The notes: generated from the letters alone by a model not told the origin. 63,694 nucleotides of DNA, filler included, from Reticulomyxa filosa (GCA_000512085.1; 11 parts of 11 records of this genome joined end to end with filler, not necessarily neighbours in it), one strand, 5' to 3'; shown: positions 44,602-55,777, counted from the first letter of the whole stretch. Program-made: numbers and translations.

Positions 44602-44652
44602 CACACACACACACACACACACCATACAAATAAAAAAAAAAATAAAAAAAAG

Positions 44653-45925
44653 GACAATGTTAATGGATATTAATACGTTGAAGTGGTCGGAGGAATTGTG
44701 CGAAGCATTTGGTGTTCCGATAACGATACTGCCGTCAATTTGCCCTTCGGCGCATCCTTACGGGACTGTTTCGCATCCAGAACTCTTCCAATGTCTGAAA
44801 GGTATCCCCATCACTGGGTGCGTTGGAGATCAGCAATCGGCATGCTTGGGACAAATGTTGATGGAAAGTGAACTCAAAAATACATTGGGAACAGGGGCAT
44901 TTTTGGTTCTCAATACTGGATCTCGAATTATTTCGACAAGTGGGACTGGGTTGCTCACAACTGTTTTATACCAATTGCCGGACAAAACTACTTATTACGG
45001 CATTGAAGGAGTTTAATTTTTTCTTTTTATTTATTTAATTTATATGTATACGTAGCATGAGGTGTGAAGACTTTTTTTTTTTTTTTTCTTCCCTCCCCTT
45101 CCCAATTTGTTATTATTGTGTTCAAAGGCAATTGGTGTCGCGGGACAAGTAATCGACTTTCTTCAAAGCAATGGAATAATTAATTCGCCTAAAGAATGTT
45201 CCAAGAACGCTTCAGAAATTGTTCGGAACAATTCATTACTGAAAGATTTGTATTTTGTATCAAGTTTCAACGGTTTGCTGTTTCCTCATTTTGATCCAAC
45301 TGCCCGTGGCATTATTGTCGGATTGACACAAGCAACGAATCGAAATGATTTGTGCTATGCTGCACTGGAAGGTGTTGCCATGCAAACTTCACAAATTGTT
45401 GATGCCATGAAAGCTTCTCTTTCTGGAGATCAAGATATCAAAGACGATGAAAAAAACTCGCCAATTGAAAAAATTAAAGTCGATGGGGGTCTGTCCCAAT
45501 CCAATGAAATGCTTCAAATCATGGCTGACTGTTGTGGAATTGTTTGTGAAAGACCTTATATGATCGAAACTACAAGTTTAGGAGCCGCTGTAGCAGCTGG
45601 GATTGGTTATGGATTGTGGCGCAATTTGAAAGAAGCACAACAATATATTCAGTCAAGAACCGATAACTCCAAACAATCAGATCTGTTTAAACCACAGATG
45701 TCATCCGAAACAAGAAATGAGCGTCAATTAAAGTGGCAAGAAGCTGTCACTAGGGCAGAGAAATGGAGTGATCAACACGATGAAAAGAAAATTACGGGCA
45801 AATCTAGTAATTCCAGTAAAGTAGAAAAAAATCCTGAAACAATTCCCTTCTATGTTGGTCTTGCTTGTGGTATATTTTTGGGTGTTCTCATATCAAAAAT
45901 AAAATTTGGTAAAAAATCAGCTTGA
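44653..45925 (+). CDS. GK: Glycerol kinase (FGGY family), 3' part
   Basis: RTMLMDINTLKWS, PITGCVGDQQSACLGQ, KNTLGTGAF, GLLTTV, KVDGGLSQS, ETTSLGAA. Hydrophobic C-terminal tail. Confidence 0.92.
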
Positions 45926-48340
45926 TATAATTTTTTGAACTTTGAAAACTTAGAATAATGTAAATTTGTATGTTATTTATGATTGAACCAGCCAAAAGAA
46001 GAAAAAATCTAATAATCATTAAACATTGGATTCTAGTATTACATATTAAATTCAGACGGATACAGTAATTTGAAAAAATTGTTGTAGATTATATTATGTT
46101 TTGATGAATTACTCAAATGTTAATCTTGTCATTGTCATCATTACTAAACGAATGGTGTTTTTGAGCAATCCAAATGTGCATTGAACAAAATATCACTAAT
46201 ACGAACTTTTGGAAAAGGCAAGTAAACACTAAGTTTTGCATTCAACACCTTCCATCGAATGCACAGCAGTCACTCTTGCAAGGCCTTTTTCCGTTTACAA
46301 ATTCATTTGGTGAAGAGATTTGAATTCTGACAAAGATGTTGAGTCAGTGTTGATGATTTTGTTTCATTTTGTTTTGAATTTGAAGGAAATTAATTGTTAA
46401 GTCAATAAATCTAATTGGCACTTTTTCAAAGCAAACATTTTCACAGTAATGATTCCCTGACTAAAAAAACATTACAATAAATTTGATTTAAAAACCAAAC
46501 AATGACAATCTGATGTGACTGATGGAAAAATGCTAAATTCTTCCCGTAAGTAGCACAGTGAAGAAGTCTGTAATCAAGAATTTCAACCTATTCAAAAATT
46601 TTTGGATATACGTATAATAAAACGTTTTCGTTTGCACGTGTCCAAAAAAAACTTGAAATCAAACTTCTCTATCATTATGTCTTTGATTCTTCGATAATGC
46701 GAATCAACCTTTCAAATTGATGGAAATATACTCAACTCGACAACAAATCTTCGCCAACATTTGTGCAAATTCGCTATTGGGAACAACGACTTGGTTTCAA
46801 ACATTCACTTTTCGTTGATTTGAGTTAAATATCGACCATAAACAACATGCGATCTCCACATTCATTCCATTAGTATCTTTTTTTTAGGGTTGCAGCTTGT
46901 TGCTCAAGCAACTGTTGGCTCCTCAAAATGCCACATACGTATCAACGCGATCACTTGTTTGAAGCTTCACAATTTACTCTTCGGCTCTTCTGCGTCGTCT
47001 TACCTTCCGTGGCGTCAATAGGTAAATCACTCCCAACGTGTTTTTGTAATAACAAACTTCGCTTCCACAAGTCAATCTTACTTGTTATAAATTTTTCGCT
47101 TTCGCTGGAAGGCACAATCAGCGGTTCGTTGGGCCTGACACTGATGCCATCGCAAGGACACACTTAAGCAGCAATGTTTTGCTATTTCTTTTTTTTTTAC
47201 TTGCTTGTCCATCACCATTTGCATTTTATTCGATAAGGAGCTTCAACTGCGTGTGAGTAGTTTGTACGTACTACCAAAACTCTTGCAATTCCATCTTCAG
47301 TTTTTCGTGTATTGTGTACTGTCTTTCTTTTCTTCAATACACAAAATCGTCCAAAGTTCACAAGCCGGATACTTGCGAAAATATAACTTTAAAAGATTCC
47401 TTCGTAGTCGCGACCATGAACTACCAATTGATTCATATCCTTTGTTCTATTAGAGAAAATCTCAAAATTTCCTCACTTCACCATTTTGACCATTACTTGA
47501 AGGGGGCTTCCCCTAGATCAAACAAAATAAGGTGAACGAAAACTTCGATTTTTGCTATAATAAGTTCAAAAAATGTTCATTTGTTCAATTAAAAAAACTA
47601 TAAAATTGGTCTATTTTACTTTCAATTGCATTTATTGACTGTTTTGTGTTGTTTTATCTATTTTTTTTCCCAACAATGTTTCCAAAGGGATTTTTAAAAA
47701 AAAAAACCAGCTAATTAAAGTAGCTTAATGTTATTGTAAAAAAAAATGAAATTTTGTAATCTCTTGATTAATTTAACAACAAATCAAAAATATAAACCTA
47801 TCGGTCGATGTTTATTTATTTATACAGTGCCGTTATTTCTCAACAAGGAAAAGTTGAAAATTAAAAGTATAACATTACATGTGGAAACGATGGAATCCAC
47901 GTTTGTTAATCTCTTTAGAATTTTGAAAAGTGTAAGACACCAACAAAACCTGGAATCAATTTTGCAATTGTTTCCTTTTGTTGATTATTAGTGCAATATG
48001 AATGGGGAAAAAAAAGGTAGAATCGAAGATTTGATAAATTTCAAAAAAAGAAAATAATTTTACTTTATAAATTTTAATTGACAATAATGCGAAGAATTGT
48101 CTCTGGATACAATAGTAACTCTAATAAACGTAGGATTTTTCTTAATGACTTATTCGTCAAACAAAATTAATTCTTAGAATAATGTGAAATTTTTTGAATT
48201 AAACCATTTAAAAAGATAGCAAGAGAATTAAGCGCAATTAAAGACAACACTACGATACCCAGATTTTAAAATTCTGCCCACATGAACGAAACACAAAGTC
48301 GAACAAGGGAAAAAAAAAGCAATTCAATGTGCACTTTATA

Positions 48341-50377
48341 TTATTTAACCCGAGCCTCTACTTTTTCATACATCAACAAATAAGCCTGCTGTTGTTTAAG
48401 CGTTTTATTGTCAACAGGTGTGACTTTGTCATCATCAAAGCATACCCATGTCGGTTTTCGACTTGTCTTGCTCGAGTGACTATTACCAGTCGATATAACA
48501 GGTACATGTGATCTTAGGCACCAGCATTCATAGTGTCCATAGCTCACCTCGCTTCCCTTGTGGATGACCACAGCTCGAAGCTATTGTAAAAAATACAAAG
48601 GCAAATCTAAATTACAATATACAGTGAGAGTGATTTTGTATGTACTAAAATAAACTTCGTATTGGTTATTCTGTCTTGTGTCACTAGCACCATTGTTGAT
48701 AGCATGATCAAGCAATAATCCTGGTGAAATATTTAACTTAGTGTCAAAATTTATATGTTTTTCCACTTTTGATAACATCCCATCTTCATAGAAAAATCGT
48801 TTCAAATGAAGAAGCAAATAATGTGGTAGCTCTGCAATTTTGCATTGTCTGTCAGCACAATACTTGAATTGCCCGCGTCTTTTTTTTTTTTTTTTGATTA
48901 AATTTTTGTGTGAACCCCCTCTTTGCAGGTTGTGTGATGGATGTACAAACGAAACTTTATTCCTGTTACCATATGTCTCTTGAGCGTATTTTCCAAAGCA
49001 CCATTGACGTGGACAATTTGTGTTTCGGAGATGTCCAAGGACAATGAAAAAAAGGGTTGGTACGACACCGAGCCTACTTTTGAAGAATCGACCAACAAGA
49101 GTGAATACAAACGTCCTCCGAACCAATCGCGCATTAATGACTGTTCCATTTTGACATCGTTTTGTGTCCTGGCTTTTTGGTGAGCATTTGCCTTTACTCT
49201 TTTCCATCCTCTCTCATCCTTGTCTGTAGTCGCACTTGTACTTTGTTCTGTTCCATTGTTCGTTTCAATGTCAAGCATCCATTCGCTGTGCAATTTTTCC
49301 ATGATCCAATGCAAGAATTCTTGAGCATCTTGCTGTCCGTCGCCAACAATGTCGTGGAACAGACGAAGTACATCCAACAAAGGATACGTATGAGAGACAG
49401 TTCCTCCAAAGTTTATCGTTTCAGAGTTTTTGATTATGAACCGGTCAAATATGCTTTTCATTCCATATGTGACTGGTCCGATTTTTTGTGCGAGAGAGAG
49501 ATCCATCCAACCGAAACAGTTGACCATTTTTGGCAATGATAACAGCGCTTGGATCACTGCGTTTAAATAACAATCAACAGATCGATTATTTATCCCACGG
49601 ACATTTACAAACGCATTTGGGTATTGTTTTGGCTGATCCTTTTTTTTTTTTTTTTTAAGTGAGAAAAGGAGAACATTTTAAATGCCATTGGGGGGGGGGG
49701 AAACAGAAAAAAAAGTATACGTACATAATATGGCCAATGCTTCTTTTCTTTCTTTTAATCTTTTCAATTCTTCAGGAGATGGCTCCTCTTGTTTCGTCTC
49801 TTTTTCTTCGTCTGGCTTTTGTTTGGGAGCTTGGGGTTTCTTCTTTTTTTTCTTTTTTGCCTTACCATTGCTTTTGTCATGCTTCAGCTGACTGGTTTGT
49901 GTCGATGAAACAGCATTCACATCGGAGGTCACGGGAACTGTGTTTGGTGGTGACAGAGGAGGTAGCAATTCTTCTGTCTTTGCTTTCGATTTTTGAACGA
50001 TTTGTGCAAATGATTGTTTTGTATTCCACGGTGAAACATTGTTGTTAGATGGTATCATTTCGTTGCCATTTGTTTGTTCGGTTGTCTGTACATTTTATTT
50101 TTTTGGCTGAACGTTATTTGTTTTCAAAAAAAACTTTCCTTTTTTTTTTTGTCACCGTTGGCTGGTTGATGGCTTTGCTTACGGTACTCGTGCCAAGAAG
50201 TGGCGGATATTTCGTGTTGGGCCATAATTGCGAAGATGCTTTGTCGTCCACAGGGACAGCAGTTGACGGAGCTGGATATTTTTTAGGAACGCTAGTGGAA
50301 TCTTTATTTTGCTTCTTTGCTATCGCACTCCAAAGTTTAGTTTTATTTGGACTATTATTAGTGGAAATATTATCCAT
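48341..50377 (-). CDS. USP10: Ubiquitin-specific protease, USP10/Ubp3-like
   Basis: Cys box RGINNRSVDCYLNAVIQAL, GQQDAQEFL, QPFFSLSLDI, LPHYLLLHLKRF, His box VVIHKG...GHY, WVCFDDDKV, AYLLMY. Low-complexity N-terminus with LWSAIA/SFAQIV motifs and the W-x-V motif in the insertion, as in USP10/Ubp3. Family certain; orthology likely. The junction near 49640-49725 is not in phase as assembled. Confidence 0.82.
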
Positions 50378-50764
50378 TCTTATACCTTTTTTTAACTCTT
50401 TAGTTTAAGCTCGATTTCCCTTTCCGCGAAACTGTTTATCAGTATTACGTCTGCTTCATTTGCTCCAATTTCATGAAAGAGTACCAAAAAAAATGAAATT
50501 TCCAAAAATGTGATAAGGTGTCACTTTTAACTTTGCAAAGTTATTTTTTTTGGTATGATATATAGTTTAATGAAACAAATCTTTCATTTAATAAATTTCT
50601 TAGAAACTAAATTAAAGAAAAAGATCAAGGTTCAGAGGAGGGCAGAGGGGGCAAGAGGGGAGGAAAAAATTAATTCCTGTTACTTTCGTTTGACAACTCT
50701 CACGGAGCTCTTATTTGACGGCATATTTCCTCCTTACTTGTATTCAGTGACATTATTATCGAAG
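50378..50764. promoter_or_regulatory. Short divergent intergenic region (putative bidirectional promoter) between USP10 and the RIOK3-N-like gene
   Basis: Opposed ATGs at 50377 (-) and 50765 (+) on the same contig. No promoter motif identified; position only. Confidence 0.4.
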
Positions 50765-51550
50765 ATGGAAAAGCCCCAAATCTCAAATGATACCGTTAAA
50801 ACAACACCGTCCAAAAAACCACCTAAGATAGATGACATTATAAGCGAACAAATGGCGGAGGAATTACAAAAAAATTTTTTAGCAGAACAATGTGAGCATA
50901 ACTTGGAGGACATTCCAGCGGAAATGTTATTGGAATCGTATATGATGTCACAAACAAAAGAAAATGGACACAATACATCACTGAATGGTGAGAATCAACA
51001 AGCAATAGCCGAAGAAAAAGATGAGAATGACCCACAAGCGATGGCACTTCCAGATGAAGATTACTTGTTGGCAATGCAGCTGCAACTTGAAGAGCAAGAT
51101 AACGAAGAAGAGCAACAGATGTTAAAAAAAAAAGATCTGGCAACAACAATACCTGCAACAACAAATAAAAAATCTCGACACTCAAATCGCAGAAAGGGAA
51201 ATAAAGATAAAATACGTATACTCCCCAATTATTATTACGAAGATAGTAAGGCAACAGGTGAGACTGAAGGTACTACTTATAATGACACATCGAATTCAAA
51301 TTATGAAAAAGTACGACAAGTTTCGTCTGGTAATAAAATGGCAATTTCGGGCACAATACATAAACACGACTTTAATGAATGGTCAACGAGACATGTCAAT
51401 CGCTTGCATAATTATGATGCCAATTTGGGTAGTGATTCTTCCTTTAAAGATGTTAGAATTGGTAACAAAGCGTATAATTCGTTTCGAAGAGAACTGGAAA
51501 AAAAAGGATTCAAAAAGTTTGATCAGCCAACACCTGCTGACAAAAAATAA
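50765..51550 (+). CDS. Kinase-less protein similar to the RIOK3 N-terminal region, intronless, 261 aa
   Basis: Five colinear blocks resembling RIOK3: IDDIISEQMAEELQ; EDYLLAMQLQLEE; GNKDKIRI; IHKHDFNEWSTRHVNRL; DVRIGNKAYNSFR. Stop codon where the RIO kinase domain would begin. Confidence 0.75.
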   Translation: MEKPQISNDTVKTTPSKKPPKIDDIISEQMAEELQKNFLAEQCEHNLEDIPAEMLLESYMMSQTKENGHNTSLNGENQQAIAEEKDENDPQAMALPDEDYLLAMQLQLEEQDNEEEQQMLKKKDLATTIPATTNKKSRHSNRRKGNKDKIRILPNYYYEDSKATGETEGTTYNDTSNSNYEKVRQVSSGNKMAISGTIHKHDFNEWSTRHVNRLHNYDANLGSDSSFKDVRIGNKAYNSFRRELEKKGFKKFDQPTPADKK

Positions 51551-52230
51551 GACTTTGTGTTTGTTGTATTTTTTATCGACTGCTTCGTTTGTTACTTTAG
51601 GAAATTCACCAGAAATTTTGGTGATTTTTCCTAGGAAATTTCTTTCGTTTCTTTTTTAGTTGCCAATTCAAAAAGTTAATAGGACCGAATTTTTTCTTTT
51701 TCTTGCACTTGAAAAAAAGTACAAGTAAAATGCTAATAATATCAGCTAAAAATAAGAAAAATATACAAAACTTTTCATCATGTATTCGGGTAGTTGTGTT
51801 TATTTGAGGTATATTTGACATGGTGTTCTGTGCAAAGAAATTGCCTATCACTGGGTCCTAATGGTTTCCTTAGCTCATTGTTTCTTCATATAATCCATGT
51901 TTGTAAGATCACCCAGTTTTTTATTACTTGCACCACATTATTGCATTGATAAAAAATGTAAGAAGTTTTTGTTTACTTTTTACTGTTGCCAAGCAATAAA
52001 CAAGATTTAATATGCAATGAATTTGAAATTTCACTGCACACGTTGGAAAATATTTGAACTGCCAAAGCAATTCAGAGTTAAATTCAATGTTACTTATTTG
52101 TTTCATGTTAAATATTTGCCAAAAAAATTTATTGTTATCAATGCAAAAAAAATAATTTTACAAAGTAGATCACAGAAGATCAACAAAACATATACTTTTC
52201 TTTTTTAAAAAAGAATGAACCTAAAAAATC

Positions 52231-55083
52231 TCAATTGACTTTGTGTTTTCTCTCAATATTTTTTCCATCGTCACTGGCCTTGCTCTCTTCACTGTTGTTT
52301 GTATCTGAATGCGTGTTGTCCCCACCACAGCGCTTACGTTGTCGCAGACACGCGGCACACTCACAATTGTTTGTACATGCCGGACACTTCCAACTTTGTA
52401 AACCCATCACAATACACAACACAATTTTTGGTGATAATTTATGTGTTATTTCATCTCTCCTTCTTTTCCTTCCTTAACTCAGTCATATTTTCGTTTGCTT
52501 GTTTTTTAAGGAACAGCTCTTGAACAAGTTCTAATGGTGCATATTTGCTCATGCATTGAGAACAAAATTTCTTTCGACAATGCTTCAAGACATAATTGCC
52601 AGGTTTCTTTCCGGGTCCCCATTTTACATTTTTACAAAACAACAAGCCATCGGGCTCTTTGTTATTTTTGCATTGATGGCAACTTGTCTTTGCTCGTTTG
52701 TGTCCGTACACAGCCCTTTTTTTGAATTTACTTGTTTGCGCTTGCTCACTACAAGGTTGTTCCGAATGACTGGACATTTGCTGTGGATTGGCCATCGCGG
52801 ATCCACAACAACGACACACACCAAAAGTTAATTATAAAAAATAGAGAGACTACAAGTCGTAACGTATACACAACGAAACCTGGCAAATATCCAATTTACG
52901 ATTTTGAATAAGATAAGTCGGAACTTGCGAGGTCATCACGCTCATCGAGGCCCGCGAGTGGGTTTTCGTGCTTTCTTGTCGATGCATTGCAACTTGTTCC
53001 GACTCTGCTGGAAAGTGTGTTGCAATAAAAGCCTGTAATGGCCGATCTTTTATAGCATCTACAATAACCTGTTACACCATTTTTTGTTATTGTTGATTTA
53101 AAACATGCAAACAAGAAAGAAAGAAAAAAGGAGAAGGACAGAAAAAAAATAGAGGCTACAAACACACAAATGAGCACAGAATACGGATAAAAAAATGTGC
53201 ACATAACGTCATAACGCCCACAGATAATGCAATCCAGACAGTTTTGTTCTTTCAACTTGTTAATACAATATCCACAGAACCGATGAAAGCAGCAGAGAAC
53301 ATACATATCCTGGTCCAATTGATGACACATAAAACATCTGATAACAAATATGTATATATGTATATATGCATATATGTTATGATTACTCCAACAACGCATA
53401 AAAATCTTATTATATCGTATTCCCTCTATTTTAAAAAAAAGAGGATGGAGAAAAAAAAAAAAAATAGCGACGTTTTTTCCCCCCTTTTAAAAAAATATTT
53501 GTTATAAATTGTCTTCATTGTATATTCCCTTCACTCATTGCCACTTAACACAAATGCTTTCTGTTGAGGAGCACAACTGTTTTGACTGCACAGTAACGAA
53601 GTCGCTATGACTTCTGTATAATCCACACATATATTGTATCATATCGTTATTATTATCATTGTTATTGGTGATCTCTACACCATACATATATATATATATA
53701 TATGTATATGTATATATACGCACACAGATACCAGTTCTTGTGCAAAGCTTTGTTAAAGTTTTAGATTGGAACATTTCCAAATTGCACAGTTTGCGAAAGT
53801 GGCGATCAAATTCCATTGCTTGTTGCAAACTGTCAGTCATTTTCTTCATTTCGGAAATCAAGGTAGTAAGGGTTTTGAACACTTGAATGACCAAGTCTCG
53901 CAGCAAATGTGCATCGCGTAGCAGCTCGCAAAACGCGTAAAATTTGGCCGTATGCTGCATACCAGTGATTGCCCGGGAGCTCACTATTGATATCGATAGG
54001 AATCGACATTTGAGCAACCTCAAAATGAGGGTATATTTCTCGCAGTGTCTTTTGAAATAGACCTGACATTTTGATTGGTGAAGAAGGCGAGGAAAGAGGA
54101 GGACTCGACTTGCATCCTTCGTCCTTTTTGCAAGGCACAGCATCACTACATCCAGAAGCGTGGTACTCAATAAACGTCTGAAAATCAAACACTTTAAACC
54201 TCTGAGCACAGAGGTTTTCTCGTTCTTTGTACATTTTGTCCAGCTTACCCATTTCTTCTCGCAACACACTCCAAATAAAATCTTTGCACTTTTTTGTTCC
54301 CACCACAGACACACATTTACATCAGTACATATATATATATATATATGTATGTGTATACTCATTGTCACGGACAACAATAATGTTGTCCATTTTCATTCAC
54401 TTCACAACTTCCAACACATCTTTGAAAATGTGTGGTTTTTTTTTGTTACTGTTGTTGCTGTTGCTATTGGTGTTGTTCTTGACACACTATTTTGCTTGCC
54501 AAGAAAAAACAATGTGTTGGGATACAACATGATTTAATAGCAACGGACACAAACTATGTTTGCTCTGCAATACTCTCTCTCTCTTTTCACTTGATTTACA
54601 CAAAAATTTAAATAAAAAATTTACTTTATTTCATACTTCTTGCTCATCGTTGTGCTTTTAATTGTTTTCTTTTTTTTTTTTTTTTGGAGGCAGCGAAATT
54701 TGCATGTTAGCAATTTAGAAATGTTTTTAACGATTTGAGGACAAAGCAAAAAAACAAACAGCAAAAAACATCATTGTATTTGCAATTAACTTTTTTGATA
54801 TCACATTGGCTTATGCTGAGCTGCATCGAAGTAAGCTGTTGTACGACTTGATAGCACTTTTGAATGTCTAATACTTGTAAACCGTTGCTAAGTTTGTTGT
54901 TTTTGCGTAGTCATTACAAGGAAAGGAGAGTGGAAGAGAAAAATATGTATAAGTTTGGAGGTAAATTCTCAACGTTTGCATTTTAGGGTGCTTGGCTTCC
55001 ATGAATAAACTTTGGCCAGCAAAAATCAAAGCTTTACTAAGTTTTCTCTTGCCAAACTTTTTGCCCTTCCTTGTCACTTTCAT
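52231..55083 (-). CDS. RING finger + zf-4CXXC_R1 (CDCA7/JMJ-type zinc finger) protein, multi-exon; 5' structure uncertain
   Basis: RING CFMC...LCCFHRFCGYC...CIIC (~53220-53340). zf-4CXXC_R1 SCHQCK...LFC...CRKKFCSQC...WKCPACTNNCECAAC (~52340-52690). 5' exons (MKVTRK at 55083; NGLQVLDIQKCYQ) splice in phase, but 53950-54560 cannot be read without frameshifts or stops. Confidence 0.65.
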
Positions 55084-55452
55084 TCAAAAAATTTCATATT
55101 TCCATAACAAAAGCACACAACTTTATTAAAATCTTTGCAATTTTTACTTTGGTTGCCTTTTTTGCTGTAGAGACTTTTTGATCAGGAAAAACAGCATACG
55201 AGAATTTTCACCAACAGTTTTAGAGTTAACATTTTCGTATAATACAAAAGTGTTTAAATGGGACAATTTGCTTCATGATCTAATCATATACATGCCAAAC
55301 AAGACAAAGAGAATGTGAGGGCTTTCCAATGGGAGGGGTTTTTTTGTAAAATATTTTGTGATGCAACTATATCACCTAAAGCGGCATTTAGATATTATTG
55401 ATTTTTATTATTTTTGGAGGGTCATTCGTTTCATTAATAACGCAAAAAGTAC

Positions 55453-55706
55453 ATGTTTGAGAAGAAGCGTCGCACGACAATGCCAAGAAGCGATAATCAA
55501 AGTGTGACCCGAAAGGGGCGTGTCTGGAAAAAATTGATAGGGTCAATATTGAATCAAATATGGACTGGAGAAGAAGGTTTGGATGTAATACGAGAACGCC
55601 TTACATCACAACGAGACTACAACATTGGTGAATTTTACGAGCAAATGGACATAACCAGTCGAGGGTTTTTCACATCCGACGACCTATCTTCGTTCTTCAA
55701 AAAGTG
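55453..55706 (+). CDS. EF-hand-like protein, 5' fragment
   Basis: FYEQMDITSRGFFTSDDLSSFF resembles an EF-hand loop. Followed by an intron and the gap. Confidence 0.5.
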
Positions 55707-55777
55707 GGTTTTTATATATATAAAAAAATTGATCAAAAAAAAAAGGTAGGATGCGTGTCCGCTCAAAAAAAAAAAAA

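Follow-up and report, generated by a model that had tools for sequence, protein, structure and literature searches.

Can the ubiquitin-reading half of RIOK3 exist as a gene of its own outside animals? In mammals, RNF10 ubiquitylates uS3 and uS5, and RIOK3 has been described (2025-2026) as the reader that couples this mark to decay of the 40S subunit. RIOK3 is built from an N-terminal ubiquitin-binding domain, which contains two MIUs, followed by a conserved helical linker and a RIO kinase domain, and deletion of residues 1-153 abolishes the binding of polyubiquitin as well as the decay of 40S subunits (PMC12008924). Ribosome binding is lost in a delta-UIM construct (aa 131-519), and a delta-KD construct (aa 1-230) is ribosome-bound and degradation-defective and does not recruit DIS3L2 (bioRxiv 10.64898/2026.04.26.720784). 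Binding to 40S subunits that carry ubiquitin on uS3/uS5, together with promotion of 18S rRNA decay, is known for human RIOK3 only. RIO3 is considered to be "present only in metazoans" (PMC7749174), and it is also treated as animal-only in PMC4894443 and PMC12008924.

The question is raised by a locus of Reticulomyxa filosa, a naked freshwater foraminiferan (PMC6783311). It lies in a window of 63,694 nucleotides, the whole stretch of DNA that was analysed, and encodes a protein that the first-pass annotation had described as a stand-alone RIOK3 N-terminal domain without a kinase. That annotation had stated that the N-terminal region of RIOK3 binds ubiquitin and 40S subunits, which agrees with the published constructs (PMC12008924; bioRxiv 10.64898/2026.04.26.720784), and that RIOK3 is usually regarded as an animal paralogue, which is likewise the published view (PMC7749174, PMC4894443, PMC12008924). 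The literature search found no paper linking RIOK3 with Foraminifera or Rhizaria.

The reading frame and its neighbours

The R. filosa piece that carries the gene spans window positions 44602-55777 and corresponds to contig ASPP01004507.1 of assembly GCA_000512085.1. The coding sequence of the 261-aa RIOK3-N-like protein occupies 50765..51550 on the plus strand, an assignment based on the ORF and its sequence, on the orthologue alignment and on dN/dS. It begins with an ATG at 50765, ends with a stop codon at 51548-51550, is intact and contains no intron. All of the blocks that had been quoted from this intronless frame are present where they had been placed: IDDIISEQMAEELQ at residues 22-35, EDYLLAMQLQLEE at residues 98-110, GNKDKIRI at residues 144-152, IHKHD...RHVNRL at residues 198-214 and DVRIGNKAYNSFR at residues 229-241, and the protein terminates in KKFDQPTPADKK, directly followed by the stop codon.

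The start codon is placed differently in other gene models. A mechanical ORF of 331 aa begins upstream at 50555, and the public gene call (P0001), of 326 aa, starts from an upstream ATG. Because three orthologues (P0002-P0004) have their initiator Met (residue 1) aligned with the Met at 50765, 261 aa is the right length. The upstream extension of 65-70 codons in the public and mechanical models (window 50555-50764) is missing from the orthologues and probably represents 5' UTR. Expression in R. filosa itself is suggested by two contigs of ~170 nt, both from one sequencing run whose RNA status is a guess, which fall inside the ORF with 95-96% identity.

Downstream of the stop codon, an intergenic spacer at 51551..52230 extends to a convergent gene. 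The GC content of these 680 bp is 0.29-0.31, no ORF in them is longer than 81 aa, and their small ORFs gave no RIO1 and no other credible Pfam match. GC content, ORF lengths and Pfam scans are in agreement with the earlier description of ~680 bp of AT-rich DNA without a RIO kinase motif, and the spacer is without kinase-coding potential. The convergent gene, of which the last two exons occupy 52231..52819 on the minus strand, is CDCA7-like (zf-4CXXC_R1), as indicated by Pfam PF10497 (E=8.2e-5 on 52234-52422) and by the public gene call. On the other side, a multi-exon ubiquitin-specific protease gene is encoded divergently, in head-to-head orientation, at 48341..50377 on the minus strand, with Pfam UCH on three exons and a public 589-aa UCH product. 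About 390 bp separate the start codons of the UCH protease gene and the RIOK3-N-like gene, and a PDB search with one exon of the protease gene found nothing. In mammals, the RNF10/RIOK3 pathway is opposed by a deubiquitylase, USP10.

Further features were seen on the same piece. Window 44657-45925 (plus strand) contains the 3' portion of a gene for a carbohydrate kinase (glycerol-type) of the FGGY family, which is cut by the edge of the piece and contains an intron of ~90 bp between 45016 and 45107. Microsatellite palindromes of the TA/TATG type at window 53340-53380, 53680-53730 and 54310-54360 break up long minus-strand ORFs without a Pfam match; they probably lie inside introns of an unannotated gene.

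Orthologues, selection and the wider family

The three orthologues, found by a word-based protein search and each encoded on a contig of about 1 kb from JGI samples, comprise 246-266 aa, share 46-52% identity with the window protein and align with it over its full length. Both the last ~30 residues (..GNKAYNS.RR.LEKKGFKKFDQPT..DKK) and the position of the stop are near-invariant in P0002-P0004, the basic C-terminal tail KKGFKKFDQPTP.DKK being strongly conserved, and a further relative, P0005, has the same C-terminal end. Comparison of the window gene with its orthologues by the Nei-Gojobori method gave a pS of ~0.7, which is near saturation, a pN of ~0.29 overall and of 0.12-0.21 in the last 80 codons, and a dN/dS of ~0.15-0.24. 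From these substitution rates, purifying selection on the window gene is evident, and the pattern is that of a functional gene and not of a pseudogene. The 266-aa orthologue is identical in the contigs L002 and L003, which come from different JGI samples; their extreme 5' ends differ (L002 1-81, L003 1-103), which points either to transcripts with alternative starts or to an artefact of the assembly.

Conservation extends beyond the stop codon. A hairpin, GGAAA-TCACCA-GAAATTT-TGGTGA-TTTCC followed by GAAATTTC, is located at 51600..51642 (plus strand), i.e. 50-92 nt past the stop of the window gene, and has the core GAAATTT(C). The same hairpin is present 60-118 nt past the stop in the orthologue contigs L001 (877-900), L002/L003 (L002 940-960) and L004 (939-954), and it is kept in all three orthologue contigs despite the saturation of synonymous sites. 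RNAalifold predicts 12 pairs, five of them with a compensatory change, G-U pairs included. The hairpin may be a signal for the 3' end or a terminator, or else a UTR element specific to this gene. Only three copies of the palindromic octamer GAAATTTC are present in the piece, against 0.67 expected. The copies at 50495-50502, 51635-51642 and 52025-52032 are all intergenic and flank the RIOK3-N-like gene, and one of them lies ~200 nt beyond the stop of the convergent zf-4CXXC_R1 gene.

Searched against 1.84 billion representative proteins with a cut-off of E <= 0.001, a profile built from the window protein and its three orthologues revealed 21 family matches of 62-473 aa. In every one of these 21 relatives, the match reaches within a few residues of the C-terminus, and animal RIOK3 was not among the 21 matches. 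A kinase or RIO1 domain was absent from the window protein, from 23 family members in a Pfam scan and from the downstream ORFs. The family shares a signature in which MIU-like helices are followed by KV..FYY and then by KHD..W..H..RLN.Y..G..GN.AYNSFR..L.KKG, which forms the end of the protein without any catalytic domain. The window protein carries this signature and aligns over the conserved blocks with at least 20 further members beyond P0002-P0004. Some members contain NLS-like basic runs, and no Pfam model covers this foraminiferal RIOK3-N-like family.

All members with a named source are Foraminifera, namely Bolivina argentea, Nonionella stella and Ammonia sp., and most of the environmental members carry no taxonomic assignment. 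B. argentea, which has two paralogues, and N. stella are represented by EukProt transcriptomes, and the Ammonia relative originates from the transcriptome MMETSP1384. Since these relatives are transcriptome data, the family is expressed, and the transcriptome-derived proteins stop at the same place as the window protein. In two environmental contigs, L008 (5822-6980) and L009 (3-1492), the gene caller had split one gene in two: exon 1 encodes the MIU1-like helix, a canonical UIM and MIU2, an intron follows directly after MIU2, and exon 2 encodes the KV..FYY and KHD domains. A convergent gene is found downstream at three genomic loci, at a distance of 680 bp in the window, of 440 bp in L005, where the neighbour is RPAP1, and of 280 bp in L009, where it is a TPR protein. 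The stand-alone, kinase-less state that had been proposed for the window protein is thus supported by the conserved stop and C-terminus, by purifying selection, by the 21 of 21 relatives that end with the module and by the convergent genes at three loci.

Other searches added little to this family. A word-based protein search with profile A3, built from full-length members, was dominated by low-complexity candidates and yielded no members besides P0010 and P0034, the latter from Ammonia. Residues 250-319 of P0025 as a query for RIOK3 retrieved only its own cluster. A metagenome locus scan with A1 matched 598 patterns, of which none was confirmed, and alignment A4 contained no stretch of sufficient conservation for such a scan.

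Similarity to the N-terminal half of RIOK3

The window protein can be divided into five parts. The first is an MIU1-like helix at residues 22-35 (IDDIISEQMAEELQ; 50828..50869, plus strand), which lies within a predicted helix at residues 22-43 with a pLDDT of ~90. In this region the A3 alignment is colinear with RIOK3 20-53, with a weak score of 2.9 bits, and the family pattern ldeImkeqqaeqL is matched to LADVMSEQLAKELQ of human RIOK3. A UIM-like helix follows at residues 49-63 (DIPAEMLLESYMMSQ; 50909..50953, plus strand), with a predicted helix at residues 52-66. Pfam recognises a UIM only in the aligned segment of the relative P0010, with a sub-threshold E=0.03, and the helix is canonical in P0010, P0033, L008 and L009. 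In human RIOK3, only ~20 residues separate the MIU1 and MIU2 matches, and there is no UIM-like counterpart.

The MIU2 helix at residues 97-110 (DEDYLLAMQLQLEE; 51053..51094, plus strand) is identified by its conservation, by its alignment with RIOK3 and by a predicted helix at residues 98-126. D97, D99, L102, A103, M104 and Q105 are invariant among the orthologues, and the block aligns, within the significant matches of profiles A2 and A3, with SSDLMLAQMLQMEY at residues 75-88 of RIOK3, the family pattern DeDyllAlqLQ corresponding to SDLMLAQMLQ in the human protein. Pfam has no MIU model; the MIU pattern (acidic-x-x-L-A-x-x-L-Q-x-acidic) is present in MIU2 and is helical in the predicted structure. 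The fourth part is a K-[VI]...Y-Y-x-[DE] block at residues 149-161 (KIRILPNYYYEDS; 51209..51247, plus strand), which appears family-wide as KV...FYY[DE]D (aKV...fyyeD in the profile) and aligns with SKVSISFENYRKVHPYEDSD of human RIOK3.

The best-conserved part of the family is the C-terminal helical domain at residues 189-261 (51329..51547, plus strand), which is supported by profile A6, by a pLDDT of 84-92, by VIA-align and by the comparison of pN with pS. It has the pattern KHD..W..H..RL..Y..G....GN.AYNSFR..LEKKGF followed by a basic tail, and helices are predicted within it at residues 203-215 and 234-246. Its KHD block (sKHD..W..kh..RLn.Y in the family) is matched to TKHDEVVCGRKNTARMENF and its C-terminal block (GN.aYNSfr) to SNHVFNALK in human RIOK3. 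This domain corresponds to the 'helical linker' of RIOK3 (residues ~158-226), a segment that is modelled in the cryo-EM entries of RIOK3 with the ubiquitylated 40S subunit.

The relationship to RIOK3 was detected by profiles. The single protein gave only noise against Pfam and PDB (Ribosomal_L37, E=3.6; epsilon-toxin, E=0.14), and the 4-sequence profile missed RIOK3 in PDB. The first-pass annotation had noted neither this invisibility to single-sequence searches nor the extra UIM-like helix. With profile A2, built from 23 sequences, the sole significant PDB match is RIOK3 60-208 in chain p of 8zdb (E=3e-7, 34 bits, zero bias), and profile A3 matches RIOK3 74-208 (E=2.9e-5). In the entries 8zdb, 8zdc and 8zdd, chain p is listed as "Serine/threonine-protein kinase RIO3". 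Profile A6 comprises 53 columns of the C-terminal domain alone, without the MIUs, and was built to exclude a resemblance based only on MIUs; its top match in PDB is RIOK3 162-208 (E=0.0024). The RIOK3 matches are colinear over the MIU1, MIU2, KV..Y..ED and KHD..N..FN blocks, and the human RIOK3 motifs that the first-pass annotation had listed are seen, in the listed order, in the HMMER alignments to the 8zdb chain. Homology to the RIOK3 N-terminal region, for which that annotation had named a profile match as the test, holds at the profile level (A2 3e-7, A3 2.9e-5, A6 0.0024), these E-values being those of profiles searched against the small PDB library.

An AlphaFold model calculated from a 25-sequence alignment has a mean pLDDT of 66. 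It contains confident helices at residues 22-43, 52-66, 98-126, 203-215 and 234-246 with disorder between them, about one third of the model being disordered. In Foldseek, RIOK3 chains rank first and second with weak scores (E=0.31 and 4.6). VIA-align places model residues 193-261 on RIOK3 158-226 of 8zdc_p with a Z of 5.1, in a register that agrees with the sequence alignment. In the wide VIA-align search no chain reached Z >=5, and RIOK3 (8zdb_p, Z 3.8) tied with unrelated helices scoring up to 3.9. All matches of the ESM Atlas structure search had TM <0.3, and an Atlas feature search with residues 186-261 gave no usable match. Among protein-language-model neighbours, which provide a lead only, the top cluster is named RIO3 (score 0.86), and a CCDC50_N cluster is also present. 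The predicted structure is consistent with RIOK3 homology, without being discriminating or an independent proof of it.

These observations bear on an alternative in which the foraminiferal protein would be a generic ubiquitin-binding adaptor of the MIU/UIM type without any link to the ribosome, its likeness to RIOK3 arising from shared short helices together with a chance or convergent C-terminal match. MIU helices occur in many unrelated proteins, as illustrated by the weak match of A3 to the MIU of RNF169, its second-best match in PDB (E=0.37), and by the CCDC50_N cluster in the Atlas; the match of the C-terminal domain to RIOK3 reaches only E=0.0024, and the structural match is not significant. 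This explanation is nevertheless unlikely, since RIOK3 is the best PDB match for three profiles, one of them MIU-free, the five blocks match in an unchanged order at similar distances, and the structural and sequence registers agree. Under this alternative, the protein would work in a different ubiquitin pathway, for example a nuclear one in view of the K/R-rich stretches and the NLS-like basic runs of family members.

On the profile alignments, the window protein is homologous to the N-terminal half of RIOK3, and homology together with the stand-alone status is given high confidence. It does not qualify as a RIOK3, since the kinase domain that defines RIOK3 was looked for and is lacking.

Possible roles, origin and known systems

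By analogy with RIOK3, the reading that fits best is that the foraminiferal protein acts as a stand-alone ubiquitin reader that docks on the 40S subunit, and it is favoured with moderate confidence. Its functional part, the reading of ubiquitin in connection with the 40S subunit, is put somewhat lower, at slightly less than an even chance. MIU1, the UIM-like helix and MIU2 would provide two or three helices for reading ubiquitin on small-subunit ribosomal proteins, and the KHD..AYNSFR C-terminal domain would serve as a putative 40S dock. The protein would then be the natural equivalent of the human delta-KD construct (aa 1-230), which suffices for binding to ubiquitylated 40S subunits. Without an ATP-binding domain, the decay-licensing step of RIOK3 would be impossible, and the protein could function as an adaptor or gatekeeper by which the ubiquitin-marked 40S subunit is either passed to another effector or shielded.

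Shielding is the core of a second alternative, which assumes the same homology: as an antagonist or decoy, the protein would occupy the ubiquitin-marked 40S subunit and protect it from decay or from re-entry into translation. Kinase-less human RIOK3 binds ribosomes, blocks or fails in degradation and does not recruit DIS3L2 (bioRxiv 10.64898/2026.04.26.720784), which would fit such a role. [quoted passage not shown] The conserved basic tail KKGFKKFDQPTP.DKK could, however, just as well serve to dock a partner, and a purely antagonistic role, argued from analogy, appears quite improbable.

A truncated pseudogene, or a mis-annotated 5' part of a full RIOK3 gene with kinase exons elsewhere or recently lost, might be suspected from the introns in this genome (the FGGY and UCH neighbours), from the intron after MIU2 in L008/L009 and from the fragmented assembly, yet it is largely refuted and very improbable in view of the stop and last ~30 residues conserved in the orthologues and P0005, the dN/dS well below 1, the common end of the transcriptome relatives, the convergent gene directly downstream at three independent loci and the 680-bp spacer without RIO-like coding potential.

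With regard to its origin, RIOK3 itself is described as an animal-only duplicate of RIOK1, and a stand-alone RIOK3 reader module outside animals is new relative to the literature searched. The existence of the reader and docking half alone outside animals provides a concrete hypothesis for the assembly of RIOK3 and suggests that RIOK3 originated when a reader of this kind was fused to a copy of RIOK1. In its widest form, this proposal is speculative: the ubiquitin-reading, 40S-docking half of RIOK3 would be an ancient protein, autonomous and older than animals, that is still encoded by a separate gene in Foraminifera, animal RIOK3 would have resulted from its fusion with a duplicate of the RIOK1 kinase, and 40S surveillance in Foraminifera would employ a kinase-less reader by which marked subunits are handed to another effector or protected. 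In the opposite direction, Foraminifera may have lost the kinase from an older fused gene. The foraminiferal protein represents a natural separation-of-function variant, an N-terminal module without the ATPase, and the KHD..AYNSFR domain of this unannotated family marks the longest-constrained residues of the poorly characterised RIOK3 "linker".

Several known systems invite comparison with this stand-alone module. The MIUs of RIOK3 have been compared with those of Rabex-5 and MINDY-1 (PMC12008924). Rabex-5, MINDY-1, RNF168/RNF169 and CCDC50 resemble the foraminiferal protein in their short amphipathic helices with the pattern [DE]..L-A-..-L-Q-..-E, but this similarity is confined to a single helix and is significant for none of them, and they contain neither the KV..YY nor the KHD..AYNSFR domain. 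SERBP1/Stm1 are similar by analogy only, as small, basic, largely disordered and kinase-less occupants of the 40S subunit, and would be analogues if the foraminiferal protein were protective. In contrast to the proposed ubiquitin reading, the binding of SERBP1 is independent of ubiquitin, and no sequence relation between the two was found.

The closest comparison is with RIOK3. The foraminiferal protein differs from it by the absence of the RIO kinase domain (RIO1, PF01163), only a short basic tail following the linker, by the extra UIM-like helix between the MIUs, and by a Trp, in most foraminiferal members, where RIOK3 has a Cys after KHD. The two also differ in their sources, the family being found in Foraminifera and RIOK3 being regarded as confined to metazoans, and the similarity between them lies below pairwise detection. 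Both share the order of an MIU1-like helix, MIU2, a K-V...Y...ED acidic block and a KHD...R[LM]..[FY]...G...[SG]N..[FY]N[SA][LF][RK] domain, and the foraminiferal protein aligns with residues ~20-226 of RIOK3, close to the extent of the ribosome-bound delta-KD construct (aa 1-230).
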